Source of the DNA: Hyaloraphidium curvatum SAG 235-1
Lineage: Eukaryota; Fungi; Monoblepharomycota
Direction: 5' to 3'
Assembly: GCA_025558095.1 (NCBI GenBank)
Contig: JAIVFI010000029.1
Coordinates: 496,001-560,000 of the forward strand
DNA: 64,000 bases
Part shown: positions 10,194 to 20,118 of the stretch, one piece after another
Layout of the letters: every line of letters begins with the position of its first letter
Numbering within the stretch: the first letter of the stretch is position 1
Notes under the pieces: generated by a model
Database searches by the model: none
Told to the model about the DNA's origin: nothing
The model's input: the letters and a program-made list of their open reading frames with translations, nothing else
Translations under genes and position numbers: made by a program

Positions 10194-10581
10194 GGACGCT
10201 CGCGTGGGTGACCAAAAGTTCCTTTTGAACTTTGGTTGAATTTATTGGGGATCAAGCATGCTTTCAATGCCGTCCGCGTCGGGCCGAAACCCGGCCACTT
10301 CGGACCGTGAACCAGCCCGAATCGAGGGATGCCGAGCCCCGGCCCGTCCGAGGGATCCCGGTTCGCAGGACGGAAGCGGCCTGCTCTGCATTTGAATTTC
10401 GACGGGACGAAAATCCACATCTAAGTGCTGGCCGCGCGTGGCCGGCCGCTTTGGAGCGGCGAACATCGCCACGCTGCGGCGTTTTCGGCCTAGCTGCCAA
10501 TCAAGGGACGGGAGTTCGAAAAGCACCCGGACCGCCTTCGCCCGAGGAGACCCTGCCGCCTGCTTCAGCTCCCGCGCCGCG

Positions 10582-11673
10582 ATGTTCCGGCGGCTGCCAG
10601 CAGCTGGCGCGCTCGTGCTTGCGGCAATGGGGGCGCTCAACGCCGCCCGCGGCCCCTCCTGCGCGGCCGCCTTCGGGCCGCACATCCGCGCGCCGCGGCT
10701 GTTCCGCGCGCTGGACGGCGACAACGCGCGGTGCCCCTCGCCGGACTTTGCCCGCGAGGCGCTGCGCGGGGCCGCGGACGGCGGGCTCGTCGTGCTCGTC
10801 GGCTGCAATAAGGGATACGGGCTGGCAGGCGCTCTGGGCGTCCTGGCGCCGCGGCACAGCATAGTCAACGGCGCACAGTGGCTCGATGCGCTCCCGGAAT
10901 CCGTGTCCCAGCCGAGGGGCGCGTGCGACGACGCCGGCGACGTCTACGTCCCCCTGGAACCCCCCCCCTCCCGCACACCGGACGTGTTCTGCTTTGACCC
11001 CGTCGACGGCAACACCCTCGCCGTCCGCGCAGCCCTCGCAAACCTCACCTCCTCGCTCCCATCGATCCGCATCGAGACCGCCGCCTTCTCCGACACACCC
11101 CGCGGCCCCGGCCCGCACACCGCCACCTTCCCAGGTTGTGCCCCGGGCCTCGAGACCTGCGGCTTCGGCATCCCGCACGATCCTGCGTTCCCGCCTTCCC
11201 CCCCTCCGGGGCCGCCCGTGCCGCTCACGTCCGTCGACGCCTTCCTCGCGACTCAGCCTCCCGATACCCGCATCGCATTTCTGAACATCGACACCGAGGG
11301 CCACGACCCCGCCGTGCTCCGCGGCGCCTCACTCGCCCTCTCCTCCGGCCGCGTGGACGCCCTGCGGTTCGAGTTCCACTCGATCGGGCTGTGGGCGCGG
11401 CAGCGCCTCCTGCCGATCGTCCGCGGGCTCGCGCGGAGCAACATGACCTGCTACTTCGCCTCCCGCGCCGGACGCGCGTACCACCTCGACCCGTGCGCGT
11501 GGGCGGACGAGTGGGAGGACAAGCGGTGGAGCAACGTCGTGTGCGCGCGGGAGGGGACCGGGTTCGGGAGGTGGCTGGCGGGGAGGAGGGTGGCGGAGGG
11601 GGACGCTGATGGGATCGCGGCGAGGGAGGGTGTGAAATGGATCGGGGGAGGAGCGCAAGACAGTGCGGGGTGA
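10582..11673 (+). CDS. FkbM-family (Methyltransf_21) SAM-dependent methyltransferase, intronless, N-terminal signal/anchor
   Basis: 'LVGCNKGY' motif I, 'VFCFDP', 'TSVDAFL', 'FLNIDTEGHDPAVLRGA', 'LRFEFH'. Confidence 0.75.
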   Translation: MFRRLPAAGALVLAAMGALNAARGPSCAAAFGPHIRAPRLFRALDGDNARCPSPDFAREALRGAADGGLVVLVGCNKGYGLAGALGVLAPRHSIVNGAQWLDALPESVSQPRGACDDAGDVYVPLEPPPSRTPDVFCFDPVDGNTLAVRAALANLTSSLPSIRIETAAFSDTPRGPGPHTATFPGCAPGLETCGFGIPHDPAFPPSPPPGPPVPLTSVDAFLATQPPDTRIAFLNIDTEGHDPAVLRGASLALSSGRVDALRFEFHSIGLWARQRLLPIVRGLARSNMTCYFASRAGRAYHLDPCAWADEWEDKRWSNVVCAREGTGFGRWLAGRRVAEGDADGIAAREGVKWIGGGAQDSAG

Positions 11674-11841: not shown

Positions 11842-14800
11842 CTACGGACGCGGCGGCACGGTCGGCCGGCCCGGCACCGGCGGCCTCTCGGACACCGCGG
11901 GCCGATCCGGCACCGGCGGCCTCGCCCTCGGCGGCACGGGGATCGCCGGTCCCAGCGCCGGTGGGGGCACGGGGATCGCGGGTCCCGGGGACGCGGGGGT
12001 GGGCACGGGCAGGGCGGAGGGAAGCGTGCCGCCGGCAAACGGCGGAGGCGCCGACGGCGGCCTCGCGATGCCCGGCACGATGCCGCCAGGCGAGGGAGGC
12101 TGCGGGTCCGGGCCCTGGAAGCTGCCGGCGCGCGCGAGCGGGAGGGCGCCCAAGGGCCTCGGGAACCCGGACGGACCCGCGCGGGGGAAGGTGCCCGGGG
12201 CGGCCGGCCGCGCGGGTACTTCCGGGGGCGCCCTGCCGCCTCCCAGGCCCCACAGGTCCCTGGTTGGCGGCGGCGCGGCCGGCAGCCCCCCGCGCGGGGG
12301 ATCCAGCGCCGCGGGACCGAGCGCCGCCGACGCCCCGCCCGACCTCGCCAGCTGCAGCTCGCGCTCCAGCTCGTGCACCCTGTCCATCAGCTTCCGGTTA
12401 CGCTCGCGCAGAGCGAGGATCATGATGTCCTTCTCGCCGCACTCGGGGCACGGCCGCACGGCGGCCGCCTCGCTGCGGCGCCGCATGGCAGCCAGCCGCG
12501 CGGCGTTGATCCGCCGCCGCTCGTCCTCGTGCGTCCGCCCGCCCACGCCGAAATCGCCCGCGGCCGAGTCGTCGAAGTCGTCGCCGTCGGCAAAGTCCTC
12601 CGAGTCCGTGGTCTCGGTCGACGTGGTGCTCTCGGACCTGTCCTCGGACCGCATCGACACGGAGCTCAGATCCGCCAGCCGCCCGGCCCCGCTCGACGTC
12701 GCCGACGACTTGCGCGCCGACCCCGAACCCGAGTGCGAATGCGAATGCGAGTGCGAGGTGCCCGTGTGCGGCTTGGAAAGCCCGCTCGAGGACGACGTCT
12801 CGCCGACGATGAGCTCCCCGACCTCGGTCCGCAGCCTGCTGGAGCTCTGCTCGTGCTCCCTCCGCCCGCGGGACCGCTCCGCCGTAGGCGACCCCGCGAA
12901 CCGCGCCGTCCGCCCGGCGCTGCGGCCCCGCATGGACGACCCGGCCGTCGACCTGCTCGACGAGATCGACGCGTTGCCCAGGTCCCCCGTGGCCGACGAC
13001 GCACGCTTGCGCTCGCCGGGCTGCCCGCGAGAGCTGCCGAGGCTAGGCGTGGTGTTGGAGCGGCGGTACATGGCCGCCTCGTGGTCCCGCAGGAGGTCGC
13101 AGACCATGATCTCGTTGGCCGTGGGCCGGTCCTTGGGGTCGTGCGCGATCATGCGCCTCAGGAGCATCCACTCGGACGGGTACCGCGCGCGGAAGCTGTG
13201 CGGGACGACGCCCTTGCGCAGCTCCATCAGCGTGTAGACGCGCTCCACGGCCGAAGCAAAGGGGTAGTAGAGCTCGAAGAAGAGCACGCCGAGCGAGTAG
13301 ATGTCCGTCTTGCTGTCGTACCGCCTCCGCGAGAGCTGCTCCGGCGACGCGTACAGCAGCGTGCCCACGCCCAGGGTGAGGTTGGTCTGCGTCACGTTGA
13401 GGTTGGGGTGGTCCTTCTTCTCCTCCTCGGCGAGCTTGCGCGCGAACGTGTCCTCCCACCCCTCCTTGAGCACCACCGAGCCCGACGCCTCGGCGCCCGA
13501 CTCGGACCCGCTGCCGTCGTCGGTGCGCACCACCATCTCGTTCCAGAACTCGCGCGCGTCCTCGGCGTCCTGGTCCCCGCCGTGCCGCGCGCGCTGCGAA
13601 ATGTCCTTGGCCAGGCCAAAATCGCCCAGGAACACGTGGTCGCCCTCGAGGAACACTGTGGGCGGACAAAGACACCGTCCTGTCAGACCCAATGGAGCGC
13701 GACGCGCATCGCTCGCCACCCACCGTTCGCAGGCTTGATGTCCCTGTGGATGAACCCCCCGTTGTGCACGTGCGCGAGCCCCGAGCAGATCTGCCTGAAG
13801 ATCTGCAGGTTCGTCTGCGGGTCCACCACCACGCTCCGGGCGCCGTTGCGGGCCTGCAGCCACTTGTGCAGGTTGGAAGGCGAGCACAGCTGCATCTGGA
13901 TGAAGAGGATCGTCGAGGCCTCGGTGCGCCGGTCGCCCGAGCGGTCGCGCTTCCTGCGTTCCTTGTCCTTGTCCTCCTTGCGCGAGGCGCGCGAGGGGGC
14001 GCGCTCGTTGGCGCTCGGCACGCGGATGGGCGGCGCCACGCTCGCGCGGGCGGGGACAGGGGGAGGCGTGGGGCGGGGCGCGGGCTGCTCCAGCACCGCG
14101 GCTGCAGGGCGGCCGGGGGGAGGCGGCGGGGGGCGGGGAAGGTCCCTCTCCTTGCCCTTGGCGGCGGCGGCGGGCATACCGGCGAGGCTCATCTCGGCCG
14201 AGTCGTTGGTGGTCCCCGTGGTGTCGCTGCTCACGTCCACGTCCCGGCCGGCGGCGGCGGCGGCCACGACGGCGGGGTTCAGGGCCGGCGCCGAGTTGTC
14301 CACGGCCTCGAAGGAGGCGTCGTTGCGCAGCACCACCTTGACCTGCGGCGCCGGCATCGCCGCAGCCGCCGCAGGCGCCGCTGCGGGTGCGCCCGGCACG
14401 GCAGGCGGAGGCCGCCTGTCCCCGACCGGGAACTGCCTCCTGTTCCGCATGATGTCCTGGATCGAGCGCATCTGCTGCGGCGTGTAGAAGTTGCGCGAGA
14501 CCTCCTCGGCCGCGAGCTCGCCGGCGCTCATGTCCGCCGCGGCCAGCCCGCCCGGTGCCGACAGCTCAATCGTATCGCCCTCCTCCTCGGCCGGCGGCCG
14601 CGCCGCGGGCGGGGGAACGGGGATTGCCGGCGCGTTCTCGGGTCCCGGAACCGACGCAGGCGCAGGCGGAGGCGGAGGCGCCGCCTCGGCGGGCTTCCCC
14701 CTGTCCGGCGTCCCCGGCCTCCTCTCCCTCCCCCCGGCCCCCTTCTCCCTCTCTTCGCTCGACGAGCTCCCCCTTTTGTCCCCGTCCTCGTCCCACACCG

Positions 14801-16595
14801 CCTCGACCCACGAGTTGTAGTACCGCACCACGTTGGGGTGGTTCGAAATTCGCGCGAACGTCTTGACCTCGCGGATGATGCGCAGGTCGTCCGGCGAGAG
14901 CGACCCCGAGCCGGCGGGCATCTGCGCCCCCGTGGCGTTGGTCCCCGCCGTGTCCGTCGCCGACCCCGTCTTGCTCGGCCTCTTCTCTGACTCGACCGAC
15001 CCCGCCGACGCCGATCCCCCCGCGGACCCGCTGCCCGCCGACCCCACGCTGGCCTCGGCGCCGCCGTGCCCCGTGCCCGTGGACCCGCTGGCCGTCGACC
15101 CGCCGCCGACGTGGTTGCCCATGGCGGACTGGTTGATGTTGCTGCTGGATTGCAGCGCCGACATGGCCATGGCGTAGTCGGCGGGGTGGCACTTGAGGCG
15201 GATCTTCTTGATGGCGTACTCCTGCCCGTCGAGGCGGTTGCGGGAGCGGTAGACGGCGCCGAAGCCGCCCTTGCCGAGGAACTCCATTTCTGCAAAGCGG
15301 GGGAAAGCCGATGAGTCGGAAGGTCGCAACGCCCGCCGGCAGGCAACCCACCCTCGAACTCCTTGGCGTACCGGCTCGTCTGGCCCCACTGCTCCATCTC
15401 CTTGTGCTTCTGCGTCACGTCCCTCAGCGTCCCCACGAACAGCCCGCCCGCGAGGTACCGCTCCATCTCGTCGTCGCGGAGGTTGGCCAGCCACTCCTTG
15501 GGGAACTGCCCCAGCGACACGTCCACGGGGAACTGCGTGCCGTCCTTCCTCAGCCCGCGCAGCGTGCGCGTGACGCCGATCAGCTTGGGCGTGCCCCCGT
15601 TGCGGTACTCGGACATGTATCGGTCGTGGTGCTTGGAGTACCGCTGCGGCATGAGAATGTTGAGGGGCTTGATGCCGATCACCTCCTCCTTGGACCAGCC
15701 GAACATGTTGACGGCGGCGCGGTTGAACTCGAGGATCAGGCCGCGGCCGTTGGCCACGATGACGGCGTCGATGATGGTGTCGAGGGTCATGGAGATGAAG
15801 GGGGGGAAGATGGGGAGCGCAGAGACGGAGCCGGAGCCGGTGGAGGAGATTGACTCGGCGGAGGAGCCGGGGTCCCGGGCGGGGGTGCCGCCGCCGGGGT
15901 GTGGGACGGGGACCGGGGAGGGGCGGTGCGGGATCGAGAAGAGAGAGTGCGAGGCCGAGCCGACCGAGTGCGAGAGGGAGTTGCTGGCGTTGGTGTTGGG
16001 GGTCGAGGCATCGGCGGACGAGTCGGTGGTGGAGAGCGAGTGCGCCGAGTGCAGCGATGCCTCGGAGGCCATGGATGCCTGGCGGGCGCGGGCGCCGGCG
16101 TCTGCGGACCCGACTTCACGTGATCAGGGAGGCGGGAGACAACGAAAAGGTGAGTCAGATCCCGGCTGCGGGCCATCCGGGCGACGCACCCGAGTTGTCC
16201 GAGAAGGACGCCGAGGGCACCGACGGCGGCGACATGGACAGCGAGCGGTCGTCGCCCGAGGCGGCGGCCCGTCCCACGGCGGCGTCCAGCACGTCCGCCC
16301 GCAGCAGCGAGCGGGCGCTCGTCGCGCTGCGGTCCGAGTGCGTCTCCGAGGGCGCCCTGTGCGTGATCGCGGGCAGCGGCGCGAGCGGGGGGTCGGGCGA
16401 GAGCGGCGCGGGGGACGGCGCCGACGGCGTGCCGGGCCCGCTGCCCGCCCCGCCGTCGTCTGCCGCCGCACCGTTCCCGCCCTCCCCGCCGAGGGCCGCC
16501 GCCGCCGCGCTGAGAGGCTGTCCGCCGACGGGCGCCGCGGGCGGGAGCGCCCGCGCGGGATCGCCCGCCGATGCCGCGCCGCCGACCGCGTCCAT
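11842..16595 (-). CDS. eIF2-alpha kinase (HRI/PEK-like) with N-terminal FixL-type PAS domain and C-terminal coiled coil, ~4 exons
   Basis: 'SRYAKEFE|EMEFLGKGGFGAVY', 'YAIKKI', 'HPNVVRYYNSWVE', long kinase insert, 'LFIQMQLC', 'IHRDIKPAN', 'GDFGLA', 'GVGTLLYASPEQL', 'DIYSLG'. PAS at ~15410-15790. Introns at ~16114-16189, ~15292-15351 and ~13658-13723. Confidence 0.88.
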
Positions 16596-17371: not shown

Positions 17372-20118
17372 TCACTTGCCCCGCCAGAACGACTTGAGGT
17401 CCGGCAGCGGCTTGTCCCCCGTTTTCGGCGGCGCCCCCAGCACCACCGAGAACCCCAGCGCGGGCTTCTGCTCCTCGCGCTGCTCCAGCAGCATCGCCAG
17501 CGCCTCTGTGCCCGACGGCCGCTGCACCCCCGCGTCCTCCTCCTCGTCCGACCCGTCCTCGTCCGCCGCCTCCTCCCGCGCAAACATGCTCCGCGCGGGG
17601 TACTCCTCCTTGGAATACGTCTCGCCGATCACCGCCAGCGACGCCGCCCAGCGCACCTTCTTGCGGCCCTGCACGCCCACGGCCGACCCGCCCTCGACCG
17701 CCGTCCCCGTCGCCGAGATCACCCCCGACCCGAACGACGCCCCGGCCCCGAGGTGCCTCAGATTCGCCGGCACGGGAATGCTCGCCAGCGGATCCTCCTT
17801 CTCCTCCCCCTCCCCCCCCCTCCATCCCCCTCTCGGTCGCGCAGATCCAGCACGCACCCGCGTCCCCGCCCGTCTGGTGCGGGCACCTCCGCGCCAGCTT
17901 CTCCGCCACCGCCATCATCTGCAAATCGGCACCCGTCAGCCGGACCCTGTCGCTCTCGAGGAACCCCTGCAGCAGCGCGCGCGCGGCGAGGTGCTCGGGC
18001 CGGCCGGAATGCTCGAGCATGTCCATGCAGCTCCGCACGTCGGCCAGCAGCGCGGCATGGAGGTGCGCCGCGCCCGCCTGCTCCGAGGACGACGCGGCCC
18101 CGAGCAGCGCGCGGAACCGCTTGAGAACGAGCAGGTGGAACCACGCCGCCGCCGCCGCCGCCTCGCTCGCGGCGACCGCGTACACGTTGGCGGCGATCTC
18201 GTCCCGCGTGTAGCGCGCCATCTGCATGCGCACGTTGGCGGAGATGATCATGGCGTTGCGGCTGGCTTCGCGGAAGGAGGGGCTGGCGAACCAGAGCTGC
18301 AGGAGCACGTCGCGGTCCCGGTCCGGGGGGAGCGAGGCGCCGAGCGCCGACCCGGTCTCGTCGTCCTCGTTGGCCGCCTCATCCTCGACGTCCTCGAACG
18401 CGCCGGGGGACGAGAGCAGCATCACCAGCTGCCGCATCATGGTCAGGTGCCCCAGCAGCTGCTGCTGCGCCGGCGGCGCGAGGAACGACACCGCCGCGCA
18501 GACCCTCTCGGCATCCGACGCCCGCGCGCCGGCGGCCACCTCGGGCGGCAGCTTGCTCTCGATCAGGTCCAGCGAGTCCCGCAGGAAGGCGCGCCGCCGC
18601 ACGGCTTCCTTGAGCAGCGGGTTGCCCAGCACCGAGCCCACGTACCCGGGCGCCACCCCCTCGACGTCGCCCTCGCCGGCCTGCCCGCGGCGGATGAGCT
18701 CCTCCGCCACCAGCACGTCGATCAGCCGCAGCCCGGCGTCGTCCTTGAGCCAGGTCGAGAACTCCTGGATCTTGAGCGCGGCGTACCGCAGCAGCCCGAT
18801 GAAGTGCATCACCCCCGACTCGCGCAGCTTGGTGACGCAGTTGAGCAGGACGATGTCCCGCACGTGCGGGTCGGCGGCGACCCCCGTGATCGGGTCCAGC
18901 CAGCCGATGTACTCGATGGCGCGGAACTTGGGGTCCGGGGGCAGGAGGTCCATGGGGATCTCGCAGTTCTGGGTGCGCAGCGAGGGCGGGGGGAGCCGCG
19001 TCAGGGTGAGCCCGGGGTGGGGGAAGGGGACGGTGGGGAATTCCTGGCCGGGGTCGAAGAGGGTTGGGGTCTGCGTGCGCGCGGCCAGGAAGCTGTCCCG
19101 GGGGAGCCGGGGGGTCAGAATTCGGATCGGCGGCGGGGGGCCCGGGATGGACCCACAACTCGAACATGGTCACGATCCAGAAGATGGCGACCCAGCTGTG
19201 GTACACGAGAAAGTCGTCCAGCCCGCTGATCTCGGGCTCGAAGCCGTCCTCGCCGGGCACGCGCATCGCGCGCCATATGGCGATGCAGTGCCGGATGAAG
19301 GCGCGCGCGGCGGCGGGGCGCTGCATCTGCATCGAGACGAACGTCATGCCTGCAAGGGAGCGGGCCGATCGGATGTCAGTGGCGCGCGAGAGAGGCGAGG
19401 GAGGGTGCCGCCCACCGATGCCGAGGGCCCACTGCAGCGCCAGGTTCTCCTCCGTGTGCAGCGCCTTCAGGTCGCCCTCCTCCTGCGCCTGCTCGGCCTC
19501 GTCCCAGAAGCGGTCCAGCTCCTCGCGCAGCAGCCGCTCGAACCGCTTCTCGTGCCTGTCCACGACCTCGGCCACGGTGAACTCGGACGAGTACTGCCTG
19601 TCCCCCGGATCGCCGCGGTCGCGCAGCACGCGGGCGCCGACCCAGTGCACCACGCAGACGAACAGCGGGTGCAGGTAGAAGCGGCGCCACCGGGGGTCCG
19701 CGTGCGGCCACGGGGCGCCCGAGTAGTGCGCGTGCGCCTCGAGGAAGGTGGTGCGCAGCTCGACGGCCGAGCCGGGCGGAATGACGGAGAGGAAGGCGGC
19801 GACGAAGGCGGGGGCGGCGGAGGGCAGCAGCTTCGGGTCGTCGTCCGCGTTGGGCGGCGTCAGAACGAAGGGGAGCAGCGCGGGGTGGCGGGCCACGGGC
19901 ACGGGCGCGCCGCGGCGGCCGTCGGCGGAGGTTGCGCGCCGCAGCGGCGCGATCGAGCGCGCCATCGGGTCCGCGCGGTCGCGGCCGCCCCATTCGGAGC
20001 GCGCGGCGAGGTCGGCGTCGGTCTCCGTCTCGGTGGCCGTCGCGTCGTCGTCGTCGGGGGGCGCAAAGGCGCGCGGCGGCGGCCCGCGGGCGAACGGCGG
20101 CCCGACGGCGGGCGACAT
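17372..20118 (-). CDS. Large alpha-helical protein of unknown function with a C-terminal PP1-docking-like motif
   Basis: Codon-biased exons from ORFs 18379..20319, 16896..18953 and 17372..17857, joined by introns (~19351-19401, ~19095-19155) and a frame change in the C-run at ~17812-17820. Confidence 0.55.

Follow-up and report, generated by a model that had tools for sequence, protein, structure and literature searches.

A PAS domain at the N terminus of eIF2-alpha (PEK-type) kinases has been described in silico for PERK-like membrane kinases of Neocallimastigomycetes, where its function was called unclear and redox sensing was suggested (Swift et al., 2021; PMC10512342). That study covers one class, mentions neither FixL nor heme binding by the PAS domain and contains no assay; it is the only account of the architecture that we found in the searchable literature, which excludes most subscription journals, and the literature searched held no FixL heme signature, aerobic members, separate clade or CxxC-coiled coil. 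Here we analyse a gene of the early-branching fungus Hyaloraphidium curvatum SAG 235-1, which lies on the minus strand of a 64,000-nucleotide (nt) stretch of contig JAIVFI010000029.1 (the window, to whose positions plain coordinates refer) and encodes a FixL-type PAS domain directly before a PEK-type kinase. The predicted heme-binding residues are intact in this fungus, and low oxygen may act directly on its translation. We know of no eIF2-alpha kinase that binds O2 through a dedicated sensor domain. The combination of PAS and PEK is not new but uncharacterised; what is new is its heme-signature form, the architecture having so far been noted only without the heme ligand. The architecture noticed in an initial annotation of this DNA has a precedent in the earlier in silico report, although that report contains neither a characterisation nor a heme proposal.

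The gut-fungus proteins ORX55979, ORX50732 and their kin, which we equate with those of PMC10512342 on the basis of organism, PAS domain and C-terminal membrane helix, resemble the window protein in carrying the PAS domain directly before the PEK kinase, fall in the same clade and share the CxxC-coiled coil; they differ in that they have neither the heme His nor the distal Arg and in most cases carry an additional membrane helix, the reverse of the window protein. FixL of Bradyrhizobium and Sinorhizobium has in common with it the PAS fold, His200, Arg220, the hydrophobic pocket and a helix leading from the PAS domain to a dimeric kinase. The window protein departs from FixL in that the PAS domain is followed by a Ser/Thr rather than a histidine kinase, in Glu, Lys and Thr at the positions of Arg206, His214 and Gly219, and in a helical PAS insert of about 20 residues (about 15500-15445) that separates the final two strands. 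Like HRI (EIF2AK1; fungal Hri), it is a predicted cytosolic PEK kinase with an insert, an N-terminal heme-related module and a C-terminal coiled coil; unlike HRI, it has a PAS domain as sensor, belongs to a separate kinase clade and lacks the HRI2_3H domain (PF22949, not seen in a Pfam scan of the gene's exons). In PASK and yeast Psk1,2 a FixL-related PAS domain also controls a eukaryotic Ser/Thr kinase, but the PAS domain of PASK, a CAMK-group kinase, is distant from the kinase and heme has not been shown there. A eukaryotic FixL-type PAS domain reported to bind heme and O2 is that of the Chlamydomonas FixL-like proteins (FXL), which have no eIF2-alpha kinase output.

The PAS-kinase fusion and its residues

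Since a 1688-nt RNA contig (public run X1) consists of 16186-15352 joined to 15289-14437 and lacks precisely the 62-nt intron between them, the PAS domain and the kinase belong to one transcript, as the RNA check proposed with the initial annotation was meant to establish. The in-frame joint predicted there (EFE/EMEF) is confirmed by a local translation check; of the intron ends given at first (about 15292-15351), 15351 is correct, and the other lies at 15290, which makes the intron two bases longer. The reading frame is open from the PAS exon to the end at 11842, and a second contig of run X1 splices out the 68-nt intron 13723-13656; the RNA support comes from separate contigs, each covering part of the gene. 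The spliced model was searched, folded and placed in trees exon by exon.

The PAS exon matches Pfam PAS (E 8.5e-13), and its closest solved structure is the heme domain of Bradyrhizobium FixL (BjFixL; E 3.6e-22), with DosP next. In the same order as the sequence, Foldseek ranks the FixL heme domain first (E 2e-13) for the AlphaFold model of the domain (predicted local distance difference test score 73). The alignment with BjFixL (1dp6) has a single gap, of one residue, ahead of the F helix, and by this alignment and the codon map the His of HDRY corresponds to proximal His200 and the Arg of LIGVTR, 20 codons apart from it, to distal Arg220; both assignments had been claimed beforehand, as had the Glu (15610) at the Arg206 position and the FixL-type PAS domain directly before an HRI/PEK-type kinase, and all of them hold. 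Positions 215, 216, 236 and 238 carry Leu, Ile, Val and Leu, a hydrophobic distal pocket, so that the domain combines the features of the FixL/DosP heme-PAS cluster: PAS fold, F-alpha His, distal Arg and hydrophobic pocket. The F-helix His is the chief heme determinant in this cluster and is absent from about 40% of it (PMC10468136); Arg220 of FixL donates a hydrogen bond to O2, the distal face being hydrophobic, and losing Arg206 weakens O2 inhibition (PMC10765370). The stricter FixL features, the propionate contacts of Arg206 and His214, are replaced by Glu and Lys; both positions are variable in bacterial homologues too, and position 206 is Glu, Asp, Thr or Ser across the family described below. 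Judged from these residues, heme binding by the PAS domain is likely and O2 binding plausible, and the route that couples ligand to output is unlike that of FixL.

The kinase is, by its sequence, of the eIF2-alpha (PEK) type, with complete catalytic motifs. Compared with the PDB, the N-lobe exon places HRI, PERK, PKR and GCN2 ahead of every other kinase, and the C-lobe exon likewise places the eIF2-alpha kinases first (PERK, E 1.6e-19; HRI, E 2.5e-19); in the tree the kinase lies inside PEK. An insert of about 305 low-complexity residues follows subdomain IV (between IV and V), and the LxIQM, AIKK, REVK, HRD, DFG and GT motifs, the activation-loop Thr and the N-terminal SRY/RF dimer motif are all present. 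PEK kinases use the SRY..E motif for back-to-back dimerisation, its Arg forming the salt bridge of the dimer. The PAS domain ends about 12 residues ahead of this motif; the linker residues S, R, Y and E are invariant within the family, and S and R occur also in HRI, PERK and GCN2. The protein has no RWD, pseudokinase or HisRS-like domain and stands outside the GCN2 clade; nor does it have the signal peptide, luminal domain or membrane helix of PERK, its N-terminal part consisting of a Ser-rich stretch and the PAS domain, and its last exon being free of hydrophobic segments (maximum 1.33). The statement that canonical GCN2, HRI, PERK and PKR carry no PAS domain is supported.

The family in zoosporic fungi and the genome context

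Within the searches made here, the family appears limited to zoosporic fungi. Members were found in Gonapodya, Polychytrium, Piromyces and Neocallimastix, among metagenomic proteins, and in a second organism (L004; 54% GC versus about 70% here) with the same PAS and kinase exons, the same intron positions and different gene neighbours. Of the relatives with a name, Gonapodya is the nearest, which indicates a monoblepharid. In P0005, P0007 (884 amino acids), P0150 and P0189, from genomic or metagenomic contigs, PAS and kinase share a single intronless frame. Since the PAS core is 81-88% identical across three species while four-fold sites differ at 57-71%, the domain is under purifying selection. 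The heme His and distal Arg are invariant across the seven closest PAS domains, down to 49% identity. The C-terminal CxxCxxKD motif and coiled coil are shared by the window protein, L004, Gonapodya, Polychytrium, Piromyces, Neocallimastix and the metagenomic members, and the window protein thus has the three family features, a PAS domain directly before PEK, membership of the clade and the CxxC-coil. A membrane helix after the coiled coil is found only in the gut fungi, in most of their members (ORX55979, ORX50732 and ORY74940, from Piromyces and Neocallimastix), and is not found in the window protein. No gut-fungus member has either the His or the Arg, and neither residue occurs in the AT-rich clade P0030. 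P0022, P0025 and P0030 include two or more paralogues in Piromyces finnis and a third, AT-rich clade (26% GC), which is without His and CxxC.

The public models of Gonapodya JEL0774 (KAJ3342743) and Polychytrium (KAI9208925) start after the PAS domain, whose exons lie just upstream (L037:2063-2476 and L036:2350-3084, respectively), an omission that hides the family from domain-architecture searches; the Polychytrium exons contain His and Arg, as metagenomic members do, and those of Gonapodya contain His, Arg not being located. The family kinase of Nowakowskiella JEL0407 (L038) has only a partial CxxC motif, and no PAS domain was found within 3 kb upstream of it, possibly a secondary loss of the sensor.

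In the kinase tree, family members form one clade (100/98), separate from HRI, GCN2 and PERK and distinct from animal, Mucoromycota and chytrid HRI. The window C-lobe exon was entered as its own row, and long-branch and near-duplicate rows were excluded, among them two long-branch rows that an earlier tree had drawn into the family clade. A joint clade with HRI was neither rejected nor supported by topology testing (approximately unbiased (AU) test, p 0.077), the backbone being weakly resolved. The proposal of the initial annotation that the PAS domain replaced the heme domain of HRI meets a kinase that forms its own clade, not nested in HRI, and is neither shown nor excluded. An alignment-based query gained PERK and GCN2 outgroups and no further family members, and the ESM Atlas yielded plant and bacterial PAS clusters only, none for the PAS-PEK family. 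A PAS search of 1.84 billion representatives, dominated by multi-PAS proteins, added two further family members.

Apparently the origin of the PAS domain is bacterial-like: the nearest PAS domains outside the family belong to histidine kinases, bacterial ones scoring 67-79 bits in the search of 1.84 billion representatives, which yielded no identifiable donor. Eukaryotes gained PAS domains from bacteria repeatedly. Bacterial contamination is ruled out, given that the PAS exon adjoins a spliced intron, has a GC content at third codon positions (0.99) matching the rest of the gene and is kept in fungal relatives. Contig C13 of the genome (120355-122432) carries two further FixL-like PAS domains, near-identical and in tandem, with an F-helix His (KHDYY) and without the FixL-type IG..R distal motif.

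The same genome contains an eIF2-alpha gene with the Ser51 motif (ELSRRRIRS) and GCN1 (C32:161780-162544). Four queries (including two GCN2 proteins, the HisRS-like region and PF12745) did not turn up GCN2, chytrid HRI and PF22949 (the latter without a positive control) did not turn up HRI, and no other PEK kinase was found with these queries together; since the searches were exon-wise and of limited depth, we speak of kinases not found rather than absent. PMC10512342 describes GCN2 as ubiquitous among fungi. Its loss from this genome, or a search gap, is possible, and the PAS-kinase may be the sole eIF2-alpha kinase; a missing GCN2 in a fungus retaining GCN1 would be unusual.

Possible oxygen control of translation and its alternatives

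The gene and its in-frame fusion, the residues, the family and the pattern of losses were observed directly; from them we infer the steps of a mechanism, and we think it on balance probable that the protein is a cytosolic eIF2-alpha kinase switched by a FixL-type heme-PAS domain, ligand state setting dimerisation and hypoxia triggering eIF2-alpha phosphorylation. The PAS domain would hold heme b through the His200 equivalent, and the Arg220 equivalent with the hydrophobic pocket would let Fe(II) heme take O2, and also CO and NO. With a linker of about 12 residues between the PAS domain and the SRY..E motif, a ligand-driven turn of the PAS dimer could make or break the active kinase dimer, which the CxxC-coiled coil at the C terminus would keep together. 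In FixL the oxy form is off and the deoxy form on. By analogy, low oxygen would switch the kinase on, Ser51 of eIF2-alpha would be phosphorylated, and bulk translation would drop in hypoxic water or sediment. Aquatic fungi would then link oxygen level to global translation in one protein that combines a sensor of bacterial type with a eukaryotic stress kinase.

Several considerations weigh against this proposal. The coupling path of FixL is not intact in the window PAS domain, because Glu and Lys replace Arg206 and His214, and the direction of the switch (deoxy = active) is taken from analogy alone. Heme binding, O2 binding and kinase activity are predictions for all family members, and clade membership of the kinase does not prove that eIF2-alpha is its substrate. 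The AT-rich clade P0030 is also without the heme His, and loss of this residue in gut fungi is not unusual, because in the FixL PAS cluster about 40% of the domains are without it; it amounts to one or two events and to no statistical correlation. On the other side, anaerobic gut fungi require heme from outside (PMC8561657) and respond to haems by releasing zoospores (PMC7609409). That they need heme yet lost the His tilts the balance towards gas over heme sensing, as weak evidence from one or two evolutionary events.

A heme-level or heme-redox sensor akin to HRI, with reversible heme or an Fe(II)/Fe(III) change and activated by heme loss or oxidation instead of O2 binding, would fill the role left free by an HRI not found in the genome; the kinship with HRI that the AU test did not reject, the missing switch residue Arg206, the conserved CxxC as a conceivable thiol-redox input and the redox sensing suggested for gut-fungus kinases (PMC10512342) all suit it. 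We nevertheless regard such a sensor as unlikely, considering that the distal Arg220 and O2-type pocket are kept, unneeded as they are for plain heme binding, and that the heme-dependent, haem-responsive gut fungi dropped the His instead of retaining it. Slightly less likely again is a PAS domain that serves for dimerisation, as a scaffold or as a binder of another small molecule, with heme non-regulatory and the kinase answering other stresses through its insert or C-terminal coil: aerobic members conserve the heme signature of the F helix and FG loop better than any other part, even though the PAS domain stays in gut-fungus members without His or Arg, is lacking from the 3 kb upstream in Nowakowskiella, and has FixL-related counterparts in PASK, where heme is not shown.

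That a gas-regulated kinase acts on a substrate other than eIF2-alpha could follow from a clade that stands apart from each of the four PEK groups tested, but seems improbable to us, since the top PDB matches of both lobes are all eIF2-alpha kinases, the protein retains the activation-loop Thr, the SRY motif and an insert of PEK type, and the genome keeps Ser51 with no other PEK found. Separate or mis-joined PAS and kinase genes, which the shortened public models of Gonapodya and Polychytrium might suggest, are hardly conceivable; the RNA contig spliced across the joint refutes them, four other organisms have intronless fusions, and the missed PAS exons adjoin the kinase in both genomes.

We therefore return to the oxygen-switched kinase, of which the fullest version is put forward tentatively, as a serious possibility short of a probable one: a fifth eIF2-alpha kinase class, old in zoosporic fungi, that would bind O2 on a FixL-type heme-PAS domain and turn hypoxia into translation arrest without HIF or a mitochondrial relay, as the only such kinase here (GCN2 and HRI lost), with a gut-fungus sensor that lost its heme ligand and was re-purposed. 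For the PAS-PERK-like kinases of rumen fungi, so far unexplained, the proposal suggests a testable function, and the family offers a natural pair for sensor evolution, the heme ligand being kept in aerobes and lost in anaerobes.

Gene layout, start and neighbours

Table 1. Parts of the PAS-kinase gene, in window positions
Feature	Position	Strand	Basis
Possible alternative first exon (16595-16190) and 88-nt intron (16189-16102)	16102..16595	-	Open frame, GT..AG fit
Ser-rich N-terminal extension, from ATG 16072 (favoured start)	15791..16072	-	RNA contig unbroken to 16186; upstream in-frame stop
PAS domain, FixL-type	15418..15790	-	Pfam PAS, BjFixL match, AlphaFold and Foldseek
His of HDRY, counterpart of proximal His200 in BjFixL	15626..15628	-	1dp6 alignment, codon map
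Glu at Arg206 position	15608..15610	-	Codon map
Arg of LIGVTR, counterpart of distal Arg220 in BjFixL	15566..15568	-	1dp6 alignment, codon map
Short helical linker from PAS into SRY..EF motif at kinase start; Arg 15373-15371	15352..15417	-	Model helix 125-138
Intron between PAS and kinase exons, 62 nt, phase 1, GT..AG	15290..15351	-	RNA contig; same position in L004
Kinase exon (N-lobe)	13724..15289	-	Best PDB matches HRI, PERK, PKR, GCN2
Kinase exon motifs: G-loop 15275, AIKK 15215, REVK 14873, LFIQMQLC 13907, HRDIKPAN 13748		-	Motif positions
Intron after HRDIKPAN, 68 nt	13656..13723	-	Skipped in RNA contig; same position in L004
Kinase C-lobe	13030..13655	-	Best PDB matches PERK, HRI; motifs
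C-lobe motifs: DFG 13623, GVGTLLYASPE 13371, long activation segment		-	Motif positions
CxxCxxKD motif, then coiled coil, family-wide	12330..12455	-	Comparison of family members
Low-complexity Pro-rich tail and stop codon	11842..12329	-	Similar tail in L004

The initial annotation extended the gene to 16595, which the RNA does not support: because 16102-16186 is retained unspliced in the 1688-nt contig and RNA coverage is zero over 16250-16443, ATG 16072 (1366 amino acids) is favoured over 16595 (1511 amino acids). The longer form could be hidden by GC-rich drop-out in the RNA data, and in a layout comparison L004 has an upstream exon and intron placed similarly to those of the 16595 model, the two upstream exons showing no sequence similarity when this was looked for. 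The choice of start leaves the PAS-kinase fusion unaffected. A low-depth 416-nt RNA contig at 16590-16982, upstream of 16595, could be its 5' untranslated region or a separate transcript.

Further upstream, a gene with KKVRW and then TYSKEEYPAR (17570-17668, minus strand) contains what we take to resemble an RVxF-plus-Arg PP1-docking motif of the neurabin/Bni4 type, not that of GADD34; it probably stands beside the kinase by chance, because it is not syntenic in L004. The downstream neighbour, also not syntenic in L004, encodes an FkbM-family methyltransferase (10438-11673, plus strand; Pfam E 3.4e-6).

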